From Ostrea edulis (lineage: Eukaryota): 64,000 bases of DNA. Of the stretch, positions 3,361 through 44,694 are shown in pieces. The translations under genes were made by a program, and so were the position numbers. Position 1 is the first letter of the stretch. Each line of letters begins with the position of its first letter. The notes beneath the pieces are model-generated. The model did no database searches. It saw only the letters and a program-made list of their open reading frames with translations, and was not told where the DNA came from. The DNA lies in contig NC_079164.1 of the NCBI RefSeq assembly GCF_947568905.1, positions 77,500,001 to 77,564,000 on the forward strand. The letters run 5' to 3'.

Positions 3361-6300
3361 CTATTCAGCAGAAAAGGTAATTTTCAGTGTAACAAAAAAA
3401 AATTCAACATATCAAAGAGGAGAAAATGATTTTCAACATTAACTGCCAATCATACAGGGCGGAGAGAGCTACCAAGAGGCCCTGGGTAGATCCAGGGCAA
3501 AACCCTCACAGAGAAACAAGAAAGTTTCACAAAGCCCTCACAGAGAAACAAGAAAGTTTCACAAAGCCCCCATGAAGGAAAACACCATTGCAGTAAAAAC
3601 CATATTGAATGAAGTCTTTACTTTCACAAAATAACATTTCTCTCAAATGTTGTTGTTACTAACTTTATATTTGATTTAATAAAGACTTTGATATTACAAT
3701 AATACATTAAATTTTGTTGTGTGTAAGAGGGGTCAGGATTGCACCCATTGTAACCTCCTTCTGTTTAACAGCCCTACAATTTACATCTATAAACCAAAAA
3801 CACCACCTCGACAACAATATTACACCAAAAGCAGCAGCTGAAGGTTTTCATTCATAAAACTGCATTAACATCAAATCCTCATTTGATCTGTTATATCAAC
3901 AAAGGACAGTAAATTTGAATGTTTTGCATATCATTACTGAAAATGTTTATACAACAGGATCTTCCAATTGCACAATAACAAAAGTGCTTTGCTTCTTTTG
4001 CGTATACAGAAGGCTAGTTTTTACCTACACCAAAAGCATATTACATACCTTGATTTTACATACCTACCTTGATAAAAGTGCGAAACACATTTAGTAAACT
4101 AACATGGTCACCTTCCTCAACAGAAAAATTTCTCTTGGCACGATTCTGCAAGAAAAGAAAATCAATTTAATAGGTGTATGTTATTTTTGTATGACAAAGC
4201 ATGCCAAAATACATATATCATATGTTAGGCTCTGCTCCGCACCCTTAGATTGATGTATTATTATGATTTGTATAATGTTTCACCCACAGCTTTCTTGACA
4301 AGCAAATAAACATTTCAATATTTTTACAAGATAAATGTACGTCAAAACAGAACCATAGCACTGTTAAAAAAAAAATCATTCTGTACGTAATGCCGGGCAA
4401 TACAAGTCCCCTACAAACCCAAGTCAATTTAAGTTGTTTGCAAATCACTGTTTGAAAGATTAAAAGTTAACAGTTTATGCATATAATCAAAATAAATATT
4501 ATACAAACAAAAATAACCAAAATGTATTTGTAAAACACTTGATGAAAAATGTTCATCTCAGAAATGAATTTCAATTTTGAAAATACATGAGGTTATAAGA
4601 ACAGCCAATTTCATGCCAGCTAGCATACTTCATGAAGCATGTTAGCGCTTCAAGAAATGCTTGCTAGTGTAAAGTGTTGCAGTTCATAACTTCATACTCA
4701 TGTATTTTTAAAAAAGAAATTTCTTTTTTATATTTACATTCTACTTTCATTTCTGTTAGAACTCCCAGAGCCATTTATAAACAATCAACCAGAAGGGTAC
4801 AGTTTAAAATTTTATTGGGTCTTTACAAACCCAAACATCACTACATATAAACAAATGCTGCCATATAATGTTGTACATATACACATACTACACCTACAAT
4901 AACTAATAATTTGGCATCTTGGGGGCTACTCATTCCTTTCTTAACAATCTATTATTAATAACAATATTTGGCTTGATCCTATCATCAAAATTGTCCGAAA
5001 GAAAAGAGTAAACAACCCTGCCTAGGGTCAATATAAACCCAGACTCATGCACTCTGGGCTGATCCCAGGAGTATGCCTGGGGCTGATCCCAGCAGGCATC
5101 ACAGAACAAGTGAACCATGCCCGGGGCTGATCCCAGCAGGCATAAAAGAAAGTGAACCATGCCCGGGGCTGATCCCAGCAGGCATCAAAGAAAGTGACCT
5201 ATGCCAGGAGCTGATCCCAGCAGGCAACGAAAGGGAACGAGTACTCTGAGCTGAACCCAGGAGCGATAACGTATTCCTGGGACTGAACCAGCAGGCATAA
5301 AACTTGTGTTAGTCTAAGAAAACACTACATACTAGTCAAAATCTATTAAAAAAATTAACAAACTACCTACGTACAATAAGTTATATGTGATGATAAAACT
5401 GTGGTATATACCGTAATAATAAGCAAAACCAAACATAGACTTGGGGGTAGAATTCCCCTGGAATGAACGCCAAATGAACGAAGGAATGAGTGATGCCCCC
5501 AAGTATATCGGTTACAAGACATTTTTTAATGGATTGTTGACAAAAAATTGTTTATTTTAGTTTTTTAAACTTAGTAAACCTTCTTTTGAGATTCAAAAAT
5601 ACAAAGTTTTTGTTGAGCTTTTTTAAGAACCTCAGGATCAGTTCTGATATATCTCACATAACAGTCAGATGTCCATCTACTTAAGTCTTTGATAATGTGG
5701 TCTTCCACCCCCGCTGCAGCAGCAGCTGTGGCAGCTCCTATTCTAAAGGAGTGACCTGCATATTTTGTGTCATTCAGGCCAACTTGCATGAGTAAAGATC
5801 TCAGATGCTGTATAAATGTATCCCTAAGCATCGGTACATGGTTAAATTCACCAGTGATAAACAATGGTGACTGCATGAGGATAGCACATGGCAAAGAATT
5901 TCTAATTTGCAGATATGAACACATGATATGTACAGGTTTAAAAACATAATTTTCATAAATAGTAATATTTACACCTCGTGAAAATGGATCTGTTTTATTT
6001 CAATTAAAATAGATGTACTATATCTATCAAGATGTGCATGGTTACAACTGCAGTGCATTCATGAGGAAATGGCTATCATTGCAAAAGACAAAGACATCAA
6101 AACGGCAAAAACATTGGAAACGTAACCCAATCTAATTAAAATCAGATCCTAGGATACGCTCACAATCGCTATAATAGGATCTGACATAACCCCATTGGGG
6201 GGTCATGTCCACATGACCTTTTGCTTGGAATATTCAGGAGAACTATCAGCCAGTAAGATTGCGCCATACAGACAATGATGGGTATTCAGGCGGTTCCTGG

Positions 6301-9300
6301 CAATTCGTAATCAAGTTGTAGTAATCGATTTCCCACGAAGTTTATTGCACTGCACTATAAAATTGTATATTCTCACATAAAGAATTTTAAACTTTCGCAA
6401 TAATGCCCAATCTATTCCGTCCATACAAACAACAAAACGTACGAGATAAAATACACCCAAATCAAATTAATTGTGAATTGCGATTTATGTATGAATAGGG
6501 ATGGATACGATTTGAATAGTTTTCAAAATAGTTTACTTAATTAACGCGAGGAATATAACGCCAGTCGACGTAAACGGTGCATTGTGACGTCACATCTAGC
6601 TGCGATGTGTTTTCTTTCAAACCAAACAATCACAGCCGTTTTCCTTGAATTGTAAACATCGATGGTTTCAAAGCAGACGCGCTGATTGGCTGATATAAAG
6701 TTCATCTGAACATAACCCCTAATCGGGTTATGCAAGATCTTCTTACGCAGAGTATACGGTGCGGATCTAAGAAGTCTGATTTTAATTAGATTGAAACGTA
6801 ATCATATAAATGTAACTGCTCGGACTGTATCTGCATTACTGTCTCACAAAAAGTAGGCCATCTTTAACCTATACGGAAATTAAAGCCTTCATTAGATATA
6901 TGCAATAAAAATATATTATATAGACAAGATTTTAATATCCTCTTATACAAATGTTAAAACATACTTATTTAGAAATAAAGTCAAAACTGGAGACCAATTT
7001 CACCTTAGGGTTAAAATTCTTTTTTTTCTTATATTACAATGCATAGAAATTAATTTGAATGAAATCTTTTTAATTCAAAGCAAATGAACAGTCCACTTAG
7101 CTCATAATGAATTGTTTTCATATTGAAGTACTCATCATCATCAACCCTCTCTGCATTGTGGACTATACAGATTAAATAAAACCCACCACATTTAATGCCT
7201 GCAAAACTATTCCTGTTCTAATGATACTAACACTCTCTGCATTGTGAACTATACAGATTAAATAAAAACCACCACATTTAATACCTACAAAACTATTTCT
7301 GTCCTAATGGTACTACATGTAACACCCTCGGCAGGGCTCATCCACATTTGTGCATGTATTTGAAATATTGTATAACTGAAGACCACAGAAAGACACGAAT
7401 TACAACATTATATTCATGTTTCACCTGAAAACAAGTTAAACGATACACTAAATTCCTTTGATCTTCATTTTTATCAATGTTCATGGTGTGAAAAGCAGGA
7501 AATGTAAATCTGATGAACACAGTATAGATCTTTGGTCACCAACTTGAATCTATACACTTAACTATGTGAAACCAATTAATTGTCCCTGTAACAGATGGAT
7601 GGATGAATAGACAGACAGACATGGTTGAACCATTATGCCCCTAAACATTTGTGAGGATACTGGCAGAATGTATACTATCAGAAATACCATAAAATATAAC
7701 TACAAATGGCCATAACTTTCTCAAAATTGAACGAATCAACATGAAAATATAATTTCTTTTTGTTAAATACATTTAAATGTCTCCCCAAATTGAAAGTGTT
7801 CCAAATTATACTCTTTCCCCTTAATGTACTGCATGGTATGGAGAAGAAATCATGTGCAGAAACATAGACATTGTGAATTGCACTATGTGCACTGAGGAAA
7901 AAGATGCAGAAGAGATTCAACATCAAAGTCACCAATGTCATTGTTGTATATGATACAAAAATACTGACTATATGCAGAAATACCAGTAGGAAAGTGAACA
8001 TACCCTTGTACAAGAAAAAAAAGAACTATAAAACACTCCTCTTTGATCCATTGTAAATTGTAGGAAAATATTAGATCCATCAGTCAAAGCAATGTGAACA
8101 CCATGAAATGATAATGAATCATAGTACAAAGTTTCAAGTCTTTTCGATAAGCCAATATATTGGAGGAGAGGCGTTCAAAAGCTATTTTACCCCCTCCACT
8201 GCATCTGGTGCAGGGGATGTATGTCAATGCTCGTAGCTGTGTTCCCGTTGGTGACAGCTACAGTGAGGAGTTTGCTGTGAAGGTCGGAGTTCATCAGGGG
8301 TCAGTACTCAGCCCTCTGCTTTTCATCATCGTGCTCGAGGCTCTTTCATGTAAATATTGTACCAGTGTCCCCTGTGAGGATCTGTATGCAGATGACCTGG
8401 TTATCATTGTTGACTCATTAGATGATGTGTCAAGAGGCTCCTGACTTGGAAAGAAGCTATGTAAAGGAAAGGACTGAGAGTGAATGCGGGCAAAACCAAG
8501 ATCATGATCTGCGGTACGGGTGTTGACCTACTTCAGGACTCAGACAGCTTCCCATGTGCTGTCTGCCATACAGGTGTAAGCAGCAATAGTATTTTCTGCA
8601 ATGGCTGCAAGCACTGGGTGCACAAGAAATGCAGAGGACTCATGCACCTGTTTGTGGACCCTGACTTTCGATGCTCAAGATGCAGGGGAATGACTCGCCC
8701 TCTTGACGGCAGGCCACAGAGTGATGTCCAAGTTGGTCTGAACAAGTTGTAGGTTCCTTCTGCTACCTCGGAGACATACTTTCTGCAGCTGGTGGCTGTG
8801 ACCTTGCAACCACTACGCATGTGAAGACCGCTTGGAAGAAGTTCAGGGAGCTGCTACCGGTCCTGACATATCACACCACCTGTTGTATACGACTCGTGGT
8901 CAAGTGTATAGCACTTGTGTACGGAGCACTATGCTACATGCCAGTTAAACCTGCATGGGCACTGACCAAGCTAAATCTTCATTGCATACAGCGCAATGAC
9001 AGGGCCATGATCAGACAGATCTGCAACATCAAGACAGAAGATATCGCCACTGTAGGTTCAACTGAATTGCTGAGGCGGCTTGGTCTCGATGACCTTGACC
9101 TCATCTTAAGGGAAAGGAGACTTCACTGGTACGGCCATATTGTCAGATCCAGCAGTGCAGTCAAGTGCGCTCTCAATATACAAGTTCCTGGTAGGCGTAG
9201 AGTTTGTCGGCCAATGATATCATGGAGAGGGCTGATGGAGAAAGATCAAAGAGAATGGAATCTCTCTACTGCCGACCCTCATGACCGGCAAAAAAGGAGA

Positions 9301-32700: not shown

Positions 32701-35700
32701 GTGGGCGCAATGTTGGGTAGACAGGTTGTCTACAAATGTATGCCATGTAGAGCATGTTATCAAGTAAAAAATGTTGGGTAGACAGGTTGTCTACAAATGT
32801 ATGCCATGTAAGGCAAAGTTTTCGATTGGGGTCATAGCAAAGCCTGCAGGCTTGGGGCCCTCTCCACCTCTCATAACAGGAGGGGAGACTTAGTACTGGA
32901 GTACTTGGGTAGAGAAGTACTACTAACCAGAAGCAATCACCGGGAAGCGGGTATACGGATGTGCTCTCAACAATCTCGGACCCAAATGTCTAGTACCACC
33001 TAAATTTGGGATCCTTGGCACCTGCGCCCAACGCAGGGCCATTGGTTTTGCCCGGTACTTATTAGTCGGTATACCAGCTATCCCTTCTGGACCCAGTTTT
33101 TTATTGTATATCCCACAATGCGGCCGTTTCAATGCCAATTCCCTAATGTCCATCACAGTTCGGAACATATGTTGTACCCTTTTGATTAGTCTTTAATAAA
33201 CATAATAAACTATAATACTCTTGTTGTCTAGTTGGCATCAGGAATGGTAATGGGTATGTGAATATCACCAAATGCAAGGAATCTTATGTTTGTAAGCATT
33301 CCTACCTGACTGTTCAATTAATTTAATATTTAGGGTAAAAAATAAAATAAATTTAATATATTTATGCCATAATTTGAAATGAATAAAATTCGATTATTTT
33401 TCGATTAATCAATCGAAAAGGTGTATCCGATTAATCCGATTGAATTCTTTTTCCTGATTGCCCATCACTAGAAGTCCAGCATACTGTATACCGACTTACT
33501 CCAGCATGCTAGAGGTTCATGGCGAAATACTTTTGACTTGGCACTGCTTCTGAGGTATATAAGGGACGTTAACAGAGTCTAACTTGTTGGAGTACCGACT
33601 TACTATACACAATGCCTGGGATGGTGATCGAGGTCTCTGCTATGTTTGTAGCCACAACAATCTTCCTTGTCGTCCTTCCACATCTCTCAAACACCTTCAT
33701 CTACAGCAAGTATTACAAAACTTTTTAGATATCAATTTTTTCTTAACAATGCACCAGTTTAGTATACAAGTACATACTGTATCTTTTCCTCTCAAAACCA
33801 CAAGATGAACAAATATCCGTTCCCCCCTACAGAGAATTTTTCACATACCTGCTCTGAAGCAGGTAGACTACCATACATTGGTAAAACCTTCATTTTCATG
33901 GCAGCTTGGGTCCTTATGCACTCCTTGGCCACTTCTCTAAGATGATTAATCATTAAATTTAAATATTTTACCCTATTACCCTGTATTTGTACCATATACA
34001 TGTATCAATGACCATGCACATCATCAAAATTGAGCCATTCCTAGCAAAAAAAGGCACTTATTTTATCCAACGTTTTTCAAAAAACGTCATAATCAAAAAA
34101 CGTATGTAACATCATTTTTTGCATACTTGAAAAGAAAAAGGTCATGATTACCAATCACGAGTTGGTTGATCTTTGATTGACTGTAATATCTCAACGACAA
34201 TCAACATTGCATGCTCTAATATTTTGAGGGATGTTCTCTATAGTTCTCACTTTAGCACTAATACACTTAAGGGCCCTTTTTGCTAGGAACAGCTCAAATA
34301 TTTTACCCTATTACCCTATATGTGTACAATATACATGTATCAGTAATCATTACATGTATCAGGTAAGTTAGGCAGACTAGAAGGGTTGACTCAAAGGCGG
34401 ATCAGGAAAATTCACCAAAAATAAAGCGCCAACATTTCTATTTACCGTACATAGATAACACACTTGTTAGATGAAATTGCATTAAAAAAAACAAAGGTAA
34501 AATTTCAGACCACTTTTTTTCTTTTTTTTAAAAAGAAAAATCCACTGAATATTCCTGATGGCCAAATTACCTGATGTCTGGTATATGATGCACTATTCAT
34601 TTATGTACTTTTTAAAAATAATATTCATGAAATTCAGTTGTGTATAATATTACATTTTTTTTATATATATATTTACTGATGCTCTTACATTAATTGTCTT
34701 GTCACAGTTTCAACTTCATCCTAAAAGAAAAGAATCATTCAACTTGTATTATATTGAAAATAGTTTAGCAGAAATTTATATACTCTAGCACTTTTCATGC
34801 TTGTCTTATATACATCATTAAAACACTGGTCTATACATGTATGTATCTAATTTTCTATTCAAACTATGAAACATATCAACTAAATACAAACAATGCAGTT
34901 ATTTCTGCCCTCTTTAAAAAATCACTTATTATGTTTATGGCCAATATAGAATTATATTTAATCTTTTTAAAACAATTTTAAATGCTCCCTCTCTGGAGCC
35001 CCTTTCTTACAAGGTAGCTTGCATGCATGACCTGAAGTGCCCTATTACAGAATGAGCTAACATAAACAACTAAGAGATTCAACATGGCACACCATCATCG
35101 TGACCATGATAAACCTCAGCAGAAGATGACAGTAGGAATGTGGAAAGAATGTTGGAATACCCCAAATGTGGAGTTCCATAACCCAGATCTGAATGAGTTG
35201 TTCGTGAAATATAACAACAGAATGCTAACAAGGCCAGGCATGAGGATATTTGTGCCAATGTGTGGAAAAGCAGTGGAGATGAAATGGCTGTTGGATCATG
35301 GATATAAGGTTGTAGGGCTGGAGGTAGCTCCTGTTCCATGCAAGGCATTCTTTGAGGAGAACAATATTCCTTATCATATCAAAGATATCCACGACATTCA
35401 TGGGGAGAAATATGAAAGCTTAGATGGCAATATTGTCATATATTGCTGTGACTTTTTTCACTTTTCCAGAGAGATTTGTGGAGATTTTGAAGCAATCTGG
35501 GACAGCGGTGGACTAAATTCTATGGATGTTGAAGACAGGCCAGTATATGTTCACAGAATCCGAACACTGATGGGCCAGGGGTGTGTAAATATGACAGAGT
35601 TTGTGAATTTTGATCCCTCAATTGTCGATATTCCTTGGAGCATGACAACAGTAGACCTACAGAAGTGCTTTGGAGAGGGATATAGTATTGAAGATGTATC

Positions 35701-38700
35701 AAAGATGGAGGCCTCTAAGAGATTACAAGATCAAGGCTGTAATTCGGTGCAACTGTTCACTATTACTAAGACCTAAATTTATATACATGTATAGACACTA
35801 ATGTGTCTAAATGAAATCTTTTTATTTTGTTTGCTCAATTCAACACCTTGAGAACAGATGTACCACAAAGACAACAGCATCCACAATTCCTAATGTATAA
35901 CAAACAGGAACTTTTTTTGAAACTGTAGAGTACGTTGGTTTTTTTTTTTTAATTTTACTCAAAAAAGAGAGACTTTTTTCAAACAGGAGAAGTATAAAAA
36001 ATATATACCCCTTTCAGGATTATCTTAGTAACAGTAGTGTAATTCATATTGAAGATTAATACCATGAAAATTGTTAACAGCCATGTATTATATATTATTT
36101 GATCAGGTATTTACCATTATGTGATCAATGTTTACCGACTTCTACATGCACTATCAGGGACGGGAAACAATTCTGCAGTATATGCAAGCAGTGTTAGTTT
36201 GGGTTGTGTTTACTTTCACCATTGTTTAAAGTCAGCTTTTTGTTATTCCCCAAATCCAATGTTTACTAAAAATCAGGTTTATTGTTGCCATAGAAATGTG
36301 TGTTTGTTTCCAGTGATAAGCTCTTTACAAACTTAGTGTACCGGTAACACGTATATTTACTTCCTCAAATCCAAGTTACACATTTTCCTTACTGAAGGGA
36401 TAAGTTACATATTTAGATGAAAAGTAACTTTCATTGTTTTTCACATCAAATACAGGGCAAATGAATAACTTTAACTAATTTGACAATTTTTGCCAAAACG
36501 AGTGCCATATTTATTTATTTTTATATGGTGAATGTTGCATTTATTAGATTGCTACATTACATTATATGTATATGCTTGATGTGTTTTGTTTGATATATTT
36601 TATGAATAAAGATGATTGTAAATGATAAATGTATACAATTCAATCAAATAAATTCTTGAAATTAAGCATACTATCATATGTATTCATTATTATTGGGATA
36701 TTAAAACTCATTTTAAAAGATCCAAAATTAAGAGAGCCCTAATCTTTCAATTGGTGACAGAACTTCATCTTTATTGTGAATTTTCATTGTCAAAGATTAT
36801 GCCAGATGATGGGCTAAATATGAAGAAGATTAGAACAAGATATTTTGTCAGAATGGATAAAGAGTATACTGTTACGAGAAATATATTAAAATCTAATATT
36901 AAGACACGATAAAAGTAAAAACAAAAGTGTTTAGCATTTATCCTTCTGTGTTTAGTACACCAGAAGTGATCGAAGTTACAGATTAAGGTTTAATACAAGA
37001 GGAATATGTACTGGTTCCAGCTAACAAAGCCTGTTCTCAGAGGGTAACAATATGTTTTTTTTCAAATGCTTCTCAACCTATCAGATTTGGGTATTTCACA
37101 TGAAAGTATAATACAATTTGTAGAGATATTAAAAGCAGAAACATTGGAAATGTGAATATTGTTTGATGAATACTCTGTTCTTGTATATAGGGTGACTGGA
37201 GTGATGCGTAAATGCAGTATTTATCGCAATTCACCTTTGAATTAGAACGCTTTACCCGATATAGTATTTCGTTGTGTGACGACACAATAGTTTACGCCAG
37301 CACCGTTTCCGGTTTTAAATATTAGTCACGGTTTATGGGGGATACTGAAAACGCTTTATCAATTAGACGCTTGAAGTAAACAATGGTGAAATATTGTTGT
37401 GTTCCACTTTGTGGTGGTTTTGGGGGTCACAAGTTTCCCACAGATCAGGAATTACTCTTGAAATGGAGGGTAGCGATCAAACAGATGGATAGGAAAACAA
37501 AAAAATTATGGAACCCAGGAAAAGAAGACGTTGTTTGCCATATACACTTCACAGAAGATGACTACAAAATCACCGAATCAGGTTAGATCGAGGTCCTATC
37601 AATCAGTTATATAAAGCTGCATCGTCAATTGATTTGTTGAATTGTTTGAATTTTTCCTTCTTTCAAATATTGATTTATAAAGTTTCTTCATTTTGTCTTG
37701 TATTCGTGTATTGATAACGTTCTTTTTTACATTCTTGAATGCGTTGCTTTGTGGTTTGTTTTTACTCTTTTTCAGGTGCAACTACTGACATGTGGTATGT
37801 ATCACAGTATTCATTTAATATAATACTAGGCTATATGACGAGACATATACTGCTTTGATAAAACGTTACAGGATGAAAGAGTGCTATGATACCATATATG
37901 TATATATATATACACACATATAACCAGCTGAGTCCTGGTCTCCACACAATGTAATTAAAATTAGATCTTCCATCCGCTCCCCAAACTGGGGAGCTGATGG
38001 AAGATCTAATTTTAATTAGATTGGGTCTCCACATTAACAATCACCATTTTCTGGTGTTATTTTCATATATTTGGTGACACCCCCCCCCCCCCCCACCTAA
38101 TATTTTTTACAGTAGAAGTGACTGCTAAAAATGCAAGGTTGAATTTGCTACATGACTATTTATGTAAATCAATTATAACAAATCTAGTTTATAATTAGCG
38201 AATCTTAAAGCTTTTAAATATAAAGTATAACTTACAACCAACATTCCTGTAACATATTCAATTTGTGACAGGTGAACGAAGACGACTTAAGTATGGAGCT
38301 GCGCCCTCTGTTTTTGACTTCAAGAATACCAGTACTACCCAGGAGTCTGACAGAGCTAAGCGAAAGAGGCTGCGAGAGTCTACTCAAGATACATGTACTC
38401 CAATGATTGAAGACCTGCCCATGTATATGGATGAATTGATTGTACATCACGAAGTTGTCGTAGATCAGTCATCTACAAGTATGTCCACATCCATGCCAGA
38501 AGAAATGTGTTCAACAGCTGAGAAAGAAATCCAGTGTGACATACCTACCTTAGGTAGATTTTCAATTGAAGGTATGAAACTGGACACTAAGATGCTTTCT
38601 TATTACACTGGTTTGAATGGCTATGATCATTTCATGCTTCTCTTTAATATTCTTGGGCCAGCAGCTTTTGACTTGAATTACAAATGTGGCTTATTAAGTC

Positions 38701-41700
38701 CACAAGATCAGTTGTTTTTAACTCTGATGAAACTCAGACAAGCAAAAGAAGATGTGGAACTTGCTATGCTCTTTAAAGTCTGTGAATCTACTGTTTCTAA
38801 AATTGTAACAACTTGGATTAACTTTTTGTATTTTCAATTAAAAGAGTTAGAGGAACAATTCTGGCCTTCTAAAGACATCATTAAAGAACATATGCCAACA
38901 GATTTTGCTAAAAAGTTTCCCAATACACGCGTAATTTTAGATGCAACCGAGCAACCAATTCACAAACCATCAAATGTTGAGGCACAATCCAAAACATGGT
39001 CTTCTTATAAACACAAAAACACGTTGAAAACCATGGTAGGTGTAACTCCAAATGGAGCAGTATCTTATGTATCCTCTACTTATGGGGGCTCTGTGTCTGA
39101 CAGACAAATCATTGAACACTCTACTCTGCTAGATGTAGGCAAATTTGATGCTGGTGACAGCATTATGGCAGATCGGGGAATTCTTGTTCAAGATTTATTT
39201 GCGAATCAGAATGTTTTTATTAATACACCTACGTTTCTCAAGGGCAAAAGCCAACTTGACCCCGAAGAAATAGTTAGAGATAGGCGAGTTGCCTCAAAAC
39301 GTATTCATGTAGAGAGGGTGATTGGGCTTGCAAAGAGGTTCAAAATTTTGAAACATGAGCTACCAATGTCAAAAATCCCCCTAGCTTCCAGAATTGTGTA
39401 CATTTGTTTTATGTTGTCAAATTTTAGGAATTGCATTGTTGATAAAAGTGCTTAAACATGTGCCAGTAGTATATCAAAATGTACATGCATACATGTCTAA
39501 GTTTAATAAATGTATGCCCTGCACATACAGTGAATCCCTTGAGAGTTGTGTTCATATTTCTGCTTACAAGTTTTAAATGTATCGTACCTTTTTTGTATCC
39601 TTTATGCAACATGTGCTGTCAATATTCAAAGGGATACATCATACAAGGATCTTGGTAGACATATCAACTTTTAAGTGTAAAAGCTATTTACCTTGAAAGG
39701 GTCAAAGTACAATATCTTTTTTTAAAAATCAATTTAAAAAGTTTAACACTTTATATAACCAACATCTATGCATTGTTACATGTATATTGTCAATACAGAA
39801 AATTTCATATCATGGATATGCAATGTATTTCATCTGAAATTGATTGGCATTCTGGGCAGAAACTTAGGCAAAAAAACATGAAGAATCATTTGCAGACTCT
39901 AATGAAATCATGAATACAAAAAAGATTCTGTATAAAAAAAATGAACTGTCTCGATAAATCATTTAGAAGAAACTTTTACACAAGTTTGCATATATGCTTC
40001 CACTTTACAGCAAGGATAACAAGTATGGCATGAAAAATTTATCATAGAATACATCAAGCTTTGGAAGAAGAGAATTCTGGCAACATTCTACATCAATATG
40101 TACTTTCTGGATGAACAAATCTTTGAAAGTGTATACAACAAAATAGCAAATTTGTTTTTTGGCAATAAGCATTTGGCCTTGTATTTGGAAAAAATATTTA
40201 GAGGTGGGTTTCAATTTCATTTCACCAGTTACAGAGTCCATTGTTAGATATGGGAAGTACTTTCCAGGCTGAATCTTCTCAAAGCGACCAGCAAAGGGAC
40301 ATTTGACTTCAATTAGTGCATCATTGCCAACGAGTCCATCCGGTGATGCCCCCAAGTAAGGTCGATCCATATCAACAAAGAAACCACATCTTTGAACACC
40401 TTGGCCAGTCTCTCTTTCAAAGGATCTGTAATGAGAGATAAAAATAAGAAAAGGCATATAATATATGTAAATAATAATTTACTGATTTGACCAATGCTTA
40501 TATAGAGCGTTAAGATTTACAAACCAGGTCTCTGCTGTACACGTGATTGTCTGACTAGCTCACACTAAAACATACCTAATAGCACGTGTCTCGTAGGTAC
40601 TTCCATGGACTAGAGCTTCACTGCGAAATACAGCAGCAGAAGGCTGGTATAGGGACTCGCAGAGTTTCTGCCTATTACGCCTGTCTGTAGCTAAACAGAT
40701 ATCTCCAAATCTTGAGGCTGTGATCCGCCATGATCTCTCCTTGAACCAATTATTTGAGCTGGCTTGTCCACGTGTCTGCTCCTCAATGGCAACTACTTTA
40801 TCTGCTGTTACCTTTAAAAAATTGTATATAACAAAAACCATATATCTTGTACTGTGTTTTGTAGTATAAAATTGCATGGTATTAGTAATACATATGAACA
40901 TGAGAAAAAATCCTTGCAATCAATTTACATTGCACATTATATCTTATTTTAACACATATACAACATTTGCACAAATGTCATAAAATTTAATTTTGTTGAA
41001 ATGCAGTTTAAGCCAATTAACAAAAGACCTACCTCAACAGCTCGTTGAACCCAATACTCTGTGAAGGGTCTTTCCAAATAATCATGGTCCAATACTGCTG
41101 CCTAGTGAAACAAAAGGTGTTACAGTTTGTTTGTTATTAAACACTTTATTTTATATGTGCAGTTTTACCCATCACTACTTACTGCTTTAGATTAACAGAC
41201 TTATAATTTTAAAATCAACATTTTATATGCATTACTAATATAGCTTGCTATAAGTTCACTATCGAGATACTTTTGACTTGACACTGCTTATAATTAGCGA
41301 TGTACAGGGACATTAAGTGAGATTCTTGCTTGTGTGAGTAATGCATTTTCATGCTTATGTTTACCTGAATATTTGCTTTCTCGATGAGATATCTGTATGT
41401 CAGATTGTCTGAGGTCTCTGCACAATGGTTTAAGACCATATTGCGAACCCTATCCGGGTAACCAGCTACACCTTTTAGATGTTCAGGGCGGGGATCATTT
41501 AAAAAATCATCAGTCAGATTCCGCTTCCTGGGCAGATCTTCAGTTTTGACTGGTGAACCTATATCAAAATTTGAATATGTTAAACATGTGGAAAAAAAAT
41601 AAATTATTGTACTTGATTCAATATATGGTCATAAAACTATTGCTTCTGTTCATCATGGAACATCACATAATATTCATGTATTTTTACCTGAGTATGAATG

Positions 41701-44694
41701 TTTGGGTTTATGAAATGTCTGCAGGTTTTCTGTGCATGATCTCTGAATCCTCAAACCTTTTCCTTCACAACAAGAGAGTAAAACTATGGCAACAGCAGCA
41801 AGATGCTTGCAAGTTCCATGGGGACCTCGTCCTGCAGGACACTCACAATGGCTGTTCAAGATGTCTCCCGAGTTTTTGTCAAATTTTAATTTGAAGTTGT
41901 ATGTTACCTTTAATTTGAAATACATACATGTATTCTGGGTAATATAATTTTTTTTAGTTATTTTTACAAAAATATCTCAGTACAGAGTAATAAAATAAGA
42001 GAAAATAACTGATAACATACATGGTACATGTACAATTAGTACTACAATGTATATTATATCCACAAATTAAATGTAATACTTGCCTTTGTTTTCATGGCTG
42101 CGCCAACAATGCCTGTAAAGAACAGGGAATTATCTTCCTTTAAATATGACACAGCCAAGACTCTATCACTTTCAACAAGCAGCCTTCCTTTCTCGATAGC
42201 CTTGACATCACCAGTGCTTTGTCTGTCACCTACACATAAGTACAAGCTCATGATTTTAAAATTTATTTACTTATAAACACATAATTATATATATGTACAA
42301 ATTATTCTATAAGATATTGCACATTCATTAAATGACTCCTAATGTTAGATGTATGTTTTACAAAAATGTTGTTCTTAATCATACAAGTAAATTATAAGAA
42401 CAAACCTGCTAATCTATGTACAAAATACATGTCTATCTGCTCAATGCCTATCTCTGGGATTTCTTCTTTATGTGATTCCTGGAGCTGTTGAAATCCCCTC
42501 GTTGGCCAATCAACTTCCAAAGGCTCAGGTATATGAATTGGGTCATTCTTGAAATCTTTATTTCTATCATATGCCTTAAGCCTACAATAAAGTACTGTAC
42601 AATGTCCACTTCCCATAAAAAAAATATTAGGTACCAAGACGTACTAGTACATGTCAGTGAATGCCATTGTATCATGTATTACAATATTAACAACAGTCCG
42701 TATAGTACTATAATTATTACGTATAATTGATGACATAAATATAACTTATATCACATTAATTTATTGAATTTTGATGCATTTTGATAAAAGAATTGTCGCA
42801 CTGAGCATCAAAACAATATTTAGGCATAATCATGCCGGCGTAAACATCCTCCGTCGTCTGCATGGGTGCAGAGCTACGAATTTGTTGAAATATTACAAAC
42901 GAAAATAACGGCTATGAGGTATGAAACTACAAACCTGTCTATAAGGTCGGCTTTTCTGCCTCTCGTGGTGGCTCCTTTTTTCTTTAACTTGTCTTTGAGT
43001 CGAGAGACGGAAAACTTTACGTAAGTTTCTCTTTCCATTTCAGTGTTTACAAGCGTCTAAGTGAAATAAAGCGTTTTAACGTATCCCCCATAACGACATA
43101 ATTTTTAGAACCGGTAACGGTCGTCGGCGAATACCATTGAATGAGACGATCGAGCAGTTTGAATGACATGTTTGATGTAATACAACAAGAGTTTTCATTG
43201 GCCGATTACAGCCCGCCCACTTTCTCGAGCTGATTCAGGTGACCGGTGATCAGATAAGATGGACGGACTAGAAAATTACTAGTTGGAGAACTGTAGCTCT
43301 CTGAAAAAATATTGTGACGGAACAGAGCTACAGATCCAGCTCTTATAAAAACCTTCGATTTACAGGGCACCAAAAGCTGCGCACGGTTGAGGAGACATCG
43401 CGTTATCGGTGTATTCTTGTGTTGCTGTCTCGTAAATTCAATATTTAAAAAATCTTAACATATTTTCCTACTATACCTGTGTCCAAACATACCTTCAAAT
43501 ATTCATTAAAGCCACACACAACCCGAAAACTCGCAGTTTCAAATGATTTCGTTTGTTGACGTAGCCATATTAGGTAGCCGGTCAATTCGAACTCTGTTGC
43601 TATTTCAAATTTGTACAATTATTAAATGTTCATATAGATGTACACGAACTTTGTAATTTTGGGAAATATTTATGTCTTACACTTAAGTTACGAGAAAACT
43701 TTGTTTTAAAGTTATTCTCCATTGTTTGAATTTGTACATCGCCATACATTGCCATTTTTGTGTATTTATGTATACATACATGTATTGTAACTTATATGAT
43801 AAGACATATGTCTTAAGCTATAAAGATAGTACATGTAACTGTATTTAAATCTATAAAGTGATCTTTGTACACTTTACATCATACTACAATGCTTCTTTTG
43901 TATCAAAGCCATGGATGGCAAATATTCCAATGCTTAAATTATGTCTGCTGTTTCTTGTTTTATAGCATCAGACAGATAATTCTTTGTTTTCCCTAGTTTT
44001 AACAAGATTACTGGAAGCACTATATAATATGCCTGTCACGAGCATAATTTAGGCTCTTTTTCTTAAGCTATGAGTTGTAGAACTTTACTTAAGGTAGTAT
44101 CAGCCAACATCAAGCTGTGATATATACTTCACTTTTGATTGTATGAATATAAGGTCCTAGCTTAAAAACTGTGACAGGAGGTAGATGCATATAAAACAAG
44201 AATGTGTGTAAAATGTTTCCCCAAATAAACCAAGTTCAACAACTTGTCAATTTTTTCTCATTGATTGATAGATTGTATATTGTTTAATGTCTCTCTCTCG
44301 AGAATATTTCACTCATATGGAGACATCACCATTGCTGGTGAGTTTGGGCTGCAAAATTTAGGCCTATATATATGCTTGTAAAGAACGATAACTATACTGG
44401 TAATTGTCAAGATAACTTGTACGTTGATCACGTGAATATTCAACAAACAACTTGTTGAAACAACAAAAATGGCCGCGTTCTGTATCGCATTGCGTACTGG
44501 TAATTGCTGCTTTATTGCATTGTCCAATTAAAATGAACTTCGTCAATTGCTGTTATCTCTCATTTTATGCAATTTCTATATATTATAGAATTACATTTGA
44601 TGTTGGTAGAGAACTCGGATTACTTCCTAAGGTGCACTCGGGCTGTTTTCAAGTTTGTGAAAAATACATGAATTTGTAGTCTTGTTGTTTGGGG

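Follow-up and report, generated by a model that had tools for sequence, protein, structure and literature searches.

A probable young, structurally complete ISL2EU-group transposon of Ostrea edulis encoding a THAP-DDE transposase and a lambda-exonuclease-like nuclease

What does a nuclease related to phage exonucleases do in a eukaryotic transposon, and can a transposon that carries one still move? The question is raised by a 5,847-bp element of the oyster Ostrea edulis that lies at 37289-43135 of a window of 64,000 nucleotides, the window being the whole stretch of DNA analysed (OX387704.1 positions 77,500,001-77,564,000, assembly GCA_947568905.1). The element and its flanks are 100% identical to OX387704.1, whose loci were fetched via their encoded proteins, and in the host they lie within a minus-strand gene for a DEAH-type helicase, in one of its introns. 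The element is very probably a young, structurally complete and autonomous cut-and-paste transposon of the ISL2EU group (PHIS / PIF-Harbinger-like). It is a known kind of element, because every structural feature tested matches the published definition of ISL2EU, and the assignment is made on such features. The two-gene architecture of ISL2EU has been described since at least 2014-2015, and the genomic observation in itself is a textbook instance of that group; a description of the O. edulis family was not found in the searchable literature.

The element is bounded by imperfect terminal inverted repeats (TIRs) of 94 nt on the left (37289-37382, plus strand) and 92 nt on the right (43044-43135, minus strand). 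They were missed by a repeat finder because of small indels and were recovered when the left end was aligned, locally and with gaps, to the reverse-complemented right end. The right TIR has GG as its terminus on the reverse strand. Outside the TIRs stands AT on either side, at 37287-37288 and at 43136-43137, which is presumed to be the target-site duplication; with the CA before the left AT and the TG after the right one, the flanks of the window copy read CA-AT...AT-TG. The left TIR abuts the ATG of the transposase gene and the right TIR stops 5 nt short of the ATG of the second gene, hereafter ORF2 (second open reading frame). As each TIR abuts the start codon of an inward-facing gene, the TIRs must, judging from the coordinates, hold the 5' untranslated regions and probably the promoters. 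Several blocks of the left TIR are kept in the TIR arms of Saccostrea elements, namely GGTTTACGCC, CCGTT.CCGGTT, GGGGAT and two AACGCTT-like repeats, and among the blocks common to the four Ostrea and Saccostrea arms are the two AACGCTT-like repeats and, at the terminus, a decamer like GGTTTACGCC. Such conserved blocks are candidate binding sites for the transposase.

Gene 1, on the plus strand, consists of two exons joined across a GT-AG intron and encodes 460 amino acids (aa) with no internal stops. Exon 1 (37383-37581) holds the C2CH part of a THAP zinc finger, and exon 2 (38272-39455, stop codon included) holds the AAPSVF box of the THAP domain, HTH_Tnp_4 and DDE_Tnp_4. In Pfam scans, which were run exon by exon on the translations of both genes and in which all reported domains exceed the curated cut-offs, gene 1 scored 38.4 bits for THAP, 51.1 for HTH_Tnp_4 and 145.8 for DDE_Tnp_4. 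The hallmarks of the THAP domain can be read in the translation: C5/C6, C10, C52 and H55, together with P19, W28, F56 and AAPSVF at residues 76-81. The DDE triad, D290, D367 and E414, stands in invariant columns of an alignment of 16 proteins (positions in the 460-aa numbering are those of the exon-2 alignment plus 67). The AVPTIF-type box sits in exon 2, and a complete THAP domain therefore depends on direct splicing of exon 1 to exon 2. The resulting junction between the THAP and DDE parts (..ESG|ER.RLK..) agrees with annotated full-length proteins of Saccostrea and Mytilus.

Gene 2 lies on the minus strand, convergent with gene 1, and its eight exons between 43038 and 40005 encode 521 aa, again with no internal stops. 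Exon 1 (42935-43038) encodes a SAP domain. It is followed by exon 2 (42406-42581), the boundary of which is conserved in Saccostrea and Mytilus, by exon 3 (42084-42229) and, after a GC-AG intron, by exon 4 (41688-41907) with a SWIM zinc finger (C163, C165, C175, H177). Exon 5 (41365-41558) is a linker region modelled with lower confidence, exon 6 (41033-41101) carries a conserved DHDY motif, and exons 7 (40576-40811) and 8 (40005-40425, stop codon included) share a YqaJ/lambda-exonuclease domain between them, the N-terminal half with W325, R329 and ITAS336 and the C-terminal half with D411, E421 and K423. The Pfam scores are 34.5 bits for SAP, 20.6 for SWIM and 35.9 for YqaJ, the last from the exon 8 piece alone. 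The donor of intron 3 reads GCAAGT (42078-42083), a junction that the 521-aa NCBI models for other copies of the element share; the six other introns are GT-AG. Those NCBI models, which belong to other O. edulis copies, run colinear with the ORF2 model given here and differ from it by only 3-8 residues. At the window copy itself the annotation splits ORF2 into models of 196 and 266 aa despite the open frame.

What had been observed at this locus from its letters alone is borne out in full by these analyses, and the identification that went with it is supported. The original prediction described an element with both ends present and AT duplications in a CA-AT-TG target, two genes of 2 and 8 exons that splice into uninterrupted frames of 460 and 521 aa, and complete DDE and PD-(D/E)xK residues, and it placed the element in the ISL2EU type; the aligned TIRs and their AT flanks, the open translations and the conserved alignment columns all agree with it, and the Pfam search that it proposed found every one of the six domains named. 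As to its splicing pattern, the ORF2 junctions are matched by the NCBI models and the transposase junction by homology, but the 460-aa form of the transposase is not the annotated one, a point taken up below.

The match to ISL2EU extends feature by feature to the published accounts (PMC4482050, PMC4122938, PMC9179366). These define the group by AT duplications at A|AT|T, established from paralogous empty sites, by a DDE/HTH/THAP transposase and by a second open reading frame with YqaJ, the function of which they state to be unknown; TIRs are 6-259 bp long and usually start with GG, the consensus is ~4.8 kb and the hosts are animals only (PMC4482050, PMC4122938, PMC9179366). The O. edulis element has AT flanks in A|AT|T, a transposase with THAP, HTH and DDE_Tnp_4, a YqaJ open reading frame convergent with it, TIRs within the published range and an animal host, and its 5,847 bp are close to the ~4.8-kb average. 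Spy, the sister clade of ISL2EU, likewise has a related DDE_Tnp_4 transposase and an AT-rich palindromic target and occurs in oysters; it differs in having a single open reading frame without THAP or a YqaJ partner and in inserting at AAA|TTT without duplication. PIF/Harbinger elements are also two-gene DNA transposons with a DDE_Tnp_4 transposase, but in Harbinger the place of the nuclease is taken by a DNA-binding protein of the Myb/SANT type, and the duplication is 3 bp long (TWA).

Further evidence that this is a transposon, and a young one, comes from other copies in the same genome. A search for near-identical copies led to six that were fetched, two each on OX387712 and OX387710 and one each on OX387705 and OX387706, so that with the window copy seven are known from unrelated sites on five chromosomes. 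The six are 98.8-99.7% identical to the window copy over the entire 5.8 kb with its introns and TIRs, and pairwise divergence among the seven is 0.05-1.07%. Homology between copies stops exactly at the ends of the TIRs, AAT directly precedes the left end in all seven, and ATT follows the right end in all six copies in which that end is present. The longer CAATTG site is found in three of six complete copies. At the level of proteins, the clusters at 90% identity contain 27 O. edulis entries for each of the two genes, under many locus names. Both frames are open in four of the seven copies, namely the window copy, L006, L007 and L008, although the left TIR of L007 has a 10-bp deletion; the others are broken by a frameshift in ORF2 (L001), by a nonsense codon, E241* (L003), and by truncation at the 3' end (L004). 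Such a family would have been active very recently.

Two other origins for the pair of genes were weighed against these copies. Segmental duplication is excluded by the copy comparison. Domestication, in which both genes would be host genes derived from a transposon and fixed at the position seen in the window, is suggested by their annotation as ordinary 'uncharacterized protein' loci, but its probability is judged to be next to nil, in view of the at least seven copies on five chromosomes that are 98.9-99.9% identical over 5.8 kb including introns and TIRs, of the frameshift, nonsense codon or truncation that breaks some of them, and of homology that ends exactly where the TIRs end. A lack of related copies sharing these termini and AT flanks, named by the original prediction as an outcome that would overturn it, was not what the search gave: such copies occupy unrelated sites on five chromosomes. 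The genes are therefore not fixed single-copy domesticated genes. As a separate observation, a transposase gene of the PIF/Harbinger type (Plant_tran/DDE_Tnp_4; L008 14449-15429) lies 2.4 kb away from the L008 copy.

Related elements in other species place the O. edulis family among elements of the same architecture. A convergent pair of THAP-DDE and YqaJ genes is also present in Saccostrea cucullata, S. echinata, Mytilus trossulus, Haliotis rufescens, Argopecten irradians and Lingula anatina. The YqaJ partner gene was present in all seven of the nearest relatives whose loci were fetched, and the full-length relatives carry THAP. In S. cucullata, Haliotis and Lingula either end has a terminus of the GG type within AAT...ATT flanks, as does the left end in the S. 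echinata copy; a search for TIRs in the Mytilus (L010) and Argopecten (L013) loci gave no convincing termini, the L010 locus ending inside the element. The Crassostrea model P0029, which has an alternative, short N-terminus, could not be placed on a contig.

The two genes have diverged to different degrees. The transposase is 81% identical to the S. cucullata protein, with a proportion of synonymous differences (pS) of 0.57, and its ratio of non-synonymous to synonymous substitution rates (dN/dS) against the Saccostrea elements is ~0.10, by which it is under strong purifying selection between oyster genera. ORF2 is ~60% identical to its Saccostrea counterparts, with a proportion of non-synonymous differences (pN) of 0.27 against a saturated pS of 0.83, and its nearest relative outside Ostrea is a Crassostrea virginica protein at 81%. 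From a transposase dN/dS of this order and from the excess of pS over pN in ORF2 it follows that both genes are kept by selection, acting at the level of the element. The discordant divergence of the two genes hints at exchange of modules between ISL2EU lineages. ORF2 differs from the Saccostrea and Mytilus elements in one further respect: a 150-nt intron (intron 7, 40426-40575) splits the YqaJ domain in the O. edulis family, the domain being encoded by one uninterrupted exon in S. cucullata and Mytilus trossulus. By this comparison of gene structures, intron 7 has been gained or lost within a transposon gene.

Can the window copy itself still move? Measured against its six sisters, it has 6 private substitutions in 5,847 bp (0.10%), none of them in the TIRs, and it is young and structurally complete. 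Several observations nevertheless weigh against an element that is typical of its group and autonomous in its own right. The left TIR has AG as its terminus in place of the usual GG in all O. edulis copies, whereas Saccostrea elements have GG at both ends; this is minor, as the published wording is 'usually' GG. The AT duplication is something that we infer from the invariant AAT/ATT flanks and from the published empty-site analysis. Four of the six private substitutions are coding and all four are non-synonymous: R34Q in the THAP domain (at 37483) and E17K, S189C and A221T in ORF2. Position 34, glutamine in the window copy, is arginine in every one of the six other O. edulis copies; among the 15 other THAP-bearing sequences aligned, 14 have it too. 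The arginine is one which we take to be equivalent to R42 of human THAP1, a residue needed for DNA binding. Finally, the NCBI transposase models at O. edulis copies are 408, 350 and 115 aa long, and the 460-aa form is represented by none of the 15 cluster members listed; the 408-aa and 115-aa models begin at an out-of-frame ATG within the THAP exon and run through a 19-nt exon that splits THAP from DDE.

On a rival reading, the window copy would be structurally intact and functionally dead or crippled, its DNA binding impaired by R34Q and most of its transcripts taking the 19-nt exon, so that it would move only in trans, with transposase from sister copies. That R34Q is private to a copy whose relatives keep the arginine favours such an outcome, as does the fact that every private coding change is non-synonymous, which is what neutral decay after insertion predicts, and so does the run of annotated models that all fall short of 460 aa. 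On the other hand both frames are open, the catalytic residues are complete and both TIRs equal the family majority; glutamine at position 34 may be tolerated, and annotation models are not quantitative transcript evidence. A dead or crippled copy is thus considered unlikely, if far from negligible. A copy that is young and complete, with a transposase that may be weakened by R34Q, is the preferred description, and such a copy would still be mobilisable in trans.

The 19-nt exon deserves consideration apart from the window copy. It lies in transposase intron 1 at 37776-37794 (plus strand), has a strong acceptor and a strong donor, and is used in the NCBI 408-aa and 115-aa models. Its inclusion shifts the frame, and the THAP frame then ends at a TGA across the junction with exon 2, before the AVPSxF box, so that a functional THAP-DDE transposase would not be made from such a transcript. 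Ostrea edulis, Saccostrea cucullata (L009 7374-7392) and S. echinata (L015 ~6299-6317) all keep the length of the exon and both of its splice sites; the annotated S. echinata model also takes the exon, and the THAP frame of that copy carries a nonsense codon as well. Upstream of the exon lies an intronic motif, CTTTGTGGTTTCT with a pyrimidine tract and CAG after it, which is met again beyond the oysters in Mytilus and Argopecten elements, in first introns that cannot otherwise be aligned. Across Ostrea, Saccostrea, Mytilus and Argopecten the common form within transposase first introns is CTTTGTGGTTT(C/G)T with the pyrimidine tract and CAG, located at 37747-37775 in the window, at ~9209 in L010 and at ~6740 in L013. 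The Mytilus acceptor would give an in-frame stop after 12 codons, and the best candidate exon in Argopecten is 57 nt long and keeps the frame.

From annotation models and sequence conservation comes the idea that oyster ISL2EU transposases may be regulated by a conserved 19-nt 'poison' exon, the 460-aa enzyme being made only when that exon is skipped; it is advanced tentatively, with the odds leaning against it. The idea is limited to oysters because the downstream exon of Mytilus and Argopecten is not consistently frame-breaking. Skipping would perhaps be specific to the germline or to stress. There is a parallel in the Drosophila P element, which likewise has an N-terminal THAP domain and a full-length transposase controlled by alternative splicing, the possible control point hypothesised here lying just after the THAP region. 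The P element belongs to an unrelated catalytic superfamily, however, and retains an intron, as opposed to the cassette exon that would be included here.

The kind of nuclease that ORF2 encodes can be read from its relatives, of which 40 were compared, from molluscs, a brachiopod, a nemertean and insects. Across them D411, E421 and K423 (in ASPDG and EVKCP) show no variation or are conserved in at least 90%. Next to no variation is seen at W325 and R329, the counterparts in the alignment of the W..R of LHK-Exo, and the SWIM ligands and the DHDY motif are invariant or nearly so. A sequence search of the PDB with the continuous YqaJ domain of Saccostrea, which is 60% identical to that of the window, retrieved LHK-Exo (3.4e-09) and lambda exonuclease. 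By way of the same Saccostrea domain, ASPDG can be aligned to the catalytic CSPDG of lambda exonuclease and EVKCP to its ELKCP. The catalytic residues of lambda exonuclease are D119, E129 and K131. R329 may be the counterpart of R28 of lambda exonuclease, which binds the 5' phosphate.

Structural comparison gave the same answer. It was made with the AlphaFold model of P0396, an O. edulis sister protein 99.4% identical to the ORF2 product of the window (three residues differ), which has a mean predicted local distance difference test score (pLDDT) of 85.8 and values >90 across the nuclease domain. Foldseek ranked LHK-Exo 3syy first (E=5.5e-10, probability 1.0, target TM-score 0.76), with lambda exonuclease 1avq and 3sm4 at ~0.6 and, at lower ranks, Mimivirus R354, herpesvirus alkaline nucleases and Cas4-type enzymes; the SWIM region matched ZSWIM8 weakly. 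On the evidence of this model, the C-terminal domain of ORF2 has the lambda-exonuclease fold with an intact D...ExK centre. The likeness to lambda exonuclease, LHK-Exo and the YqaJ phage exonucleases thus covers the fold, the D...ExK residues and the N-terminal W..R...TAS motif. The differences are that the domain is here C-terminal in a 521-aa eukaryotic protein, after SAP and SWIM, and that the element encodes no annealing partner of the RecT/Red-beta type. Two candidates for the N-terminal 300 residues of ORF2, a hidden RecT/Red-beta-type annealing protein and a relic of a MULE transposase, were rejected: Pfam finds only SAP and SWIM there, Foldseek only the ZSWIM8-like SWIM match, and MULE-YqaJ fusion proteins match the YqaJ part only.

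How might such a nuclease serve a cut-and-paste element? In the mechanism proposed, the THAP domain would bind the conserved subterminal motifs of the TIRs, and the DDE domain would excise the element and, with a stagger of 2 nt at A|AT|T, insert it there; repair of the stagger would make the AT duplication. The ORF2 nuclease would be an accessory to this reaction, resecting 5' strands where transposition makes double-strand breaks. Resection would steer repair of the donor gap to homologous recombination from the sister chromatid, by which the donor copy would be restored and copy number would rise. This role for the nuclease is put forward as a plausible proposal at somewhat less than even chances.

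The principal alternative gives the YqaJ protein a catalytic part in excision, in the manner of TnsA, with the DDE domain cutting the 3' ends and the PD-(D/E)xK nuclease cutting or trimming the 5' non-transferred strands. Tn7 provides the precedent, as its TnsB (DDE) and TnsA (restriction-enzyme fold) divide the cleavage of strands between them. The intact PD-(D/E)xK active site, the presence of two DNA- or partner-binding modules (SAP and SWIM) and the retention of ORF2 beside the transposase in three animal phyla, that is in molluscs, brachiopods and the nemertean Tubulanus, would all suit a TnsA-like protein. Its best structural matches, lambda Exo and LHK-Exo, are however processive 5'-3' exonucleases and not endonucleases. 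Harbinger3_DR is reported (Sinzelle et al. 2008) to need only a Myb-like DNA-binding partner and no nuclease. The Spy transposases of the sister group, of which cgSpy and cvSpy are active in cells, complete transposition alone (PMC11304231). Because these single-ORF transposases are fully active by themselves, the ISL2EU nuclease is more likely to be an accessory than a strand cleaver (PMC11304231), and a TnsA-like role is judged improbable. Resection by an accessory nuclease remains the favoured, if tentative, account of ORF2.

Recruitment of a nuclease of this kind has a counterpart in KolobokE, another eukaryotic lineage of DDE transposons that has taken up a lambda-exonuclease-like PD-(D/E)xK nuclease (PMC9587614). 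KolobokE differs in that its nuclease is fused downstream of its transposase domain, and in belonging to another superfamily. The KolobokE target duplication is TTAA. Among the proteins collected here, the close YqaJ relatives P0140, P0194, P0203 and P0281 are fusions of 770-1155 aa in which YqaJ stands C-terminal to a Mutator-like transposase domain (PF20700). These fusions probably reflect the same kind of lineage as the KolobokE-type fusions (PMC9587614).

Some further features of the locus can be added. Within transposase intron 1, at 37944-38026, lies a near-perfect palindrome with 40-nt arms that are 93% complementary. It is bracketed on both sides by GGTCTCCACA, and the reverse-strand self-match to which it gives rise is also present in L001, L003 and L004; either an old foldback element nested in the intron or some structural feature may account for it. 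Elsewhere in the 64-kb window no further copies, fragments or miniature inverted-repeat transposable elements (MITEs) of the family were found. The same helicase intron also contains, 1.5 kb upstream of the transposon at 35084-35776 on the plus strand, an intronless open reading frame of 230 aa with a TPMT methyltransferase domain, which is an annotated gene.

ISL2EU elements are among the least studied of eukaryotic DNA transposons, and no assay of ISL2EU activity was found in the literature consulted. With both frames open in four of the seven copies sampled and a divergence of ~1% at most, the O. edulis family offers natural and probably active sequences for reconstituting ISL2EU transposition. 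The family could serve to ask how an exonuclease of the lambda type contributes to a cut-and-paste reaction, and a gene-transfer tool might be made from it, as has been done with the sister Spy group. The poison exon, if true, would be a self-limiting splicing switch of the transposon, analogous to the control of the P element by splicing.

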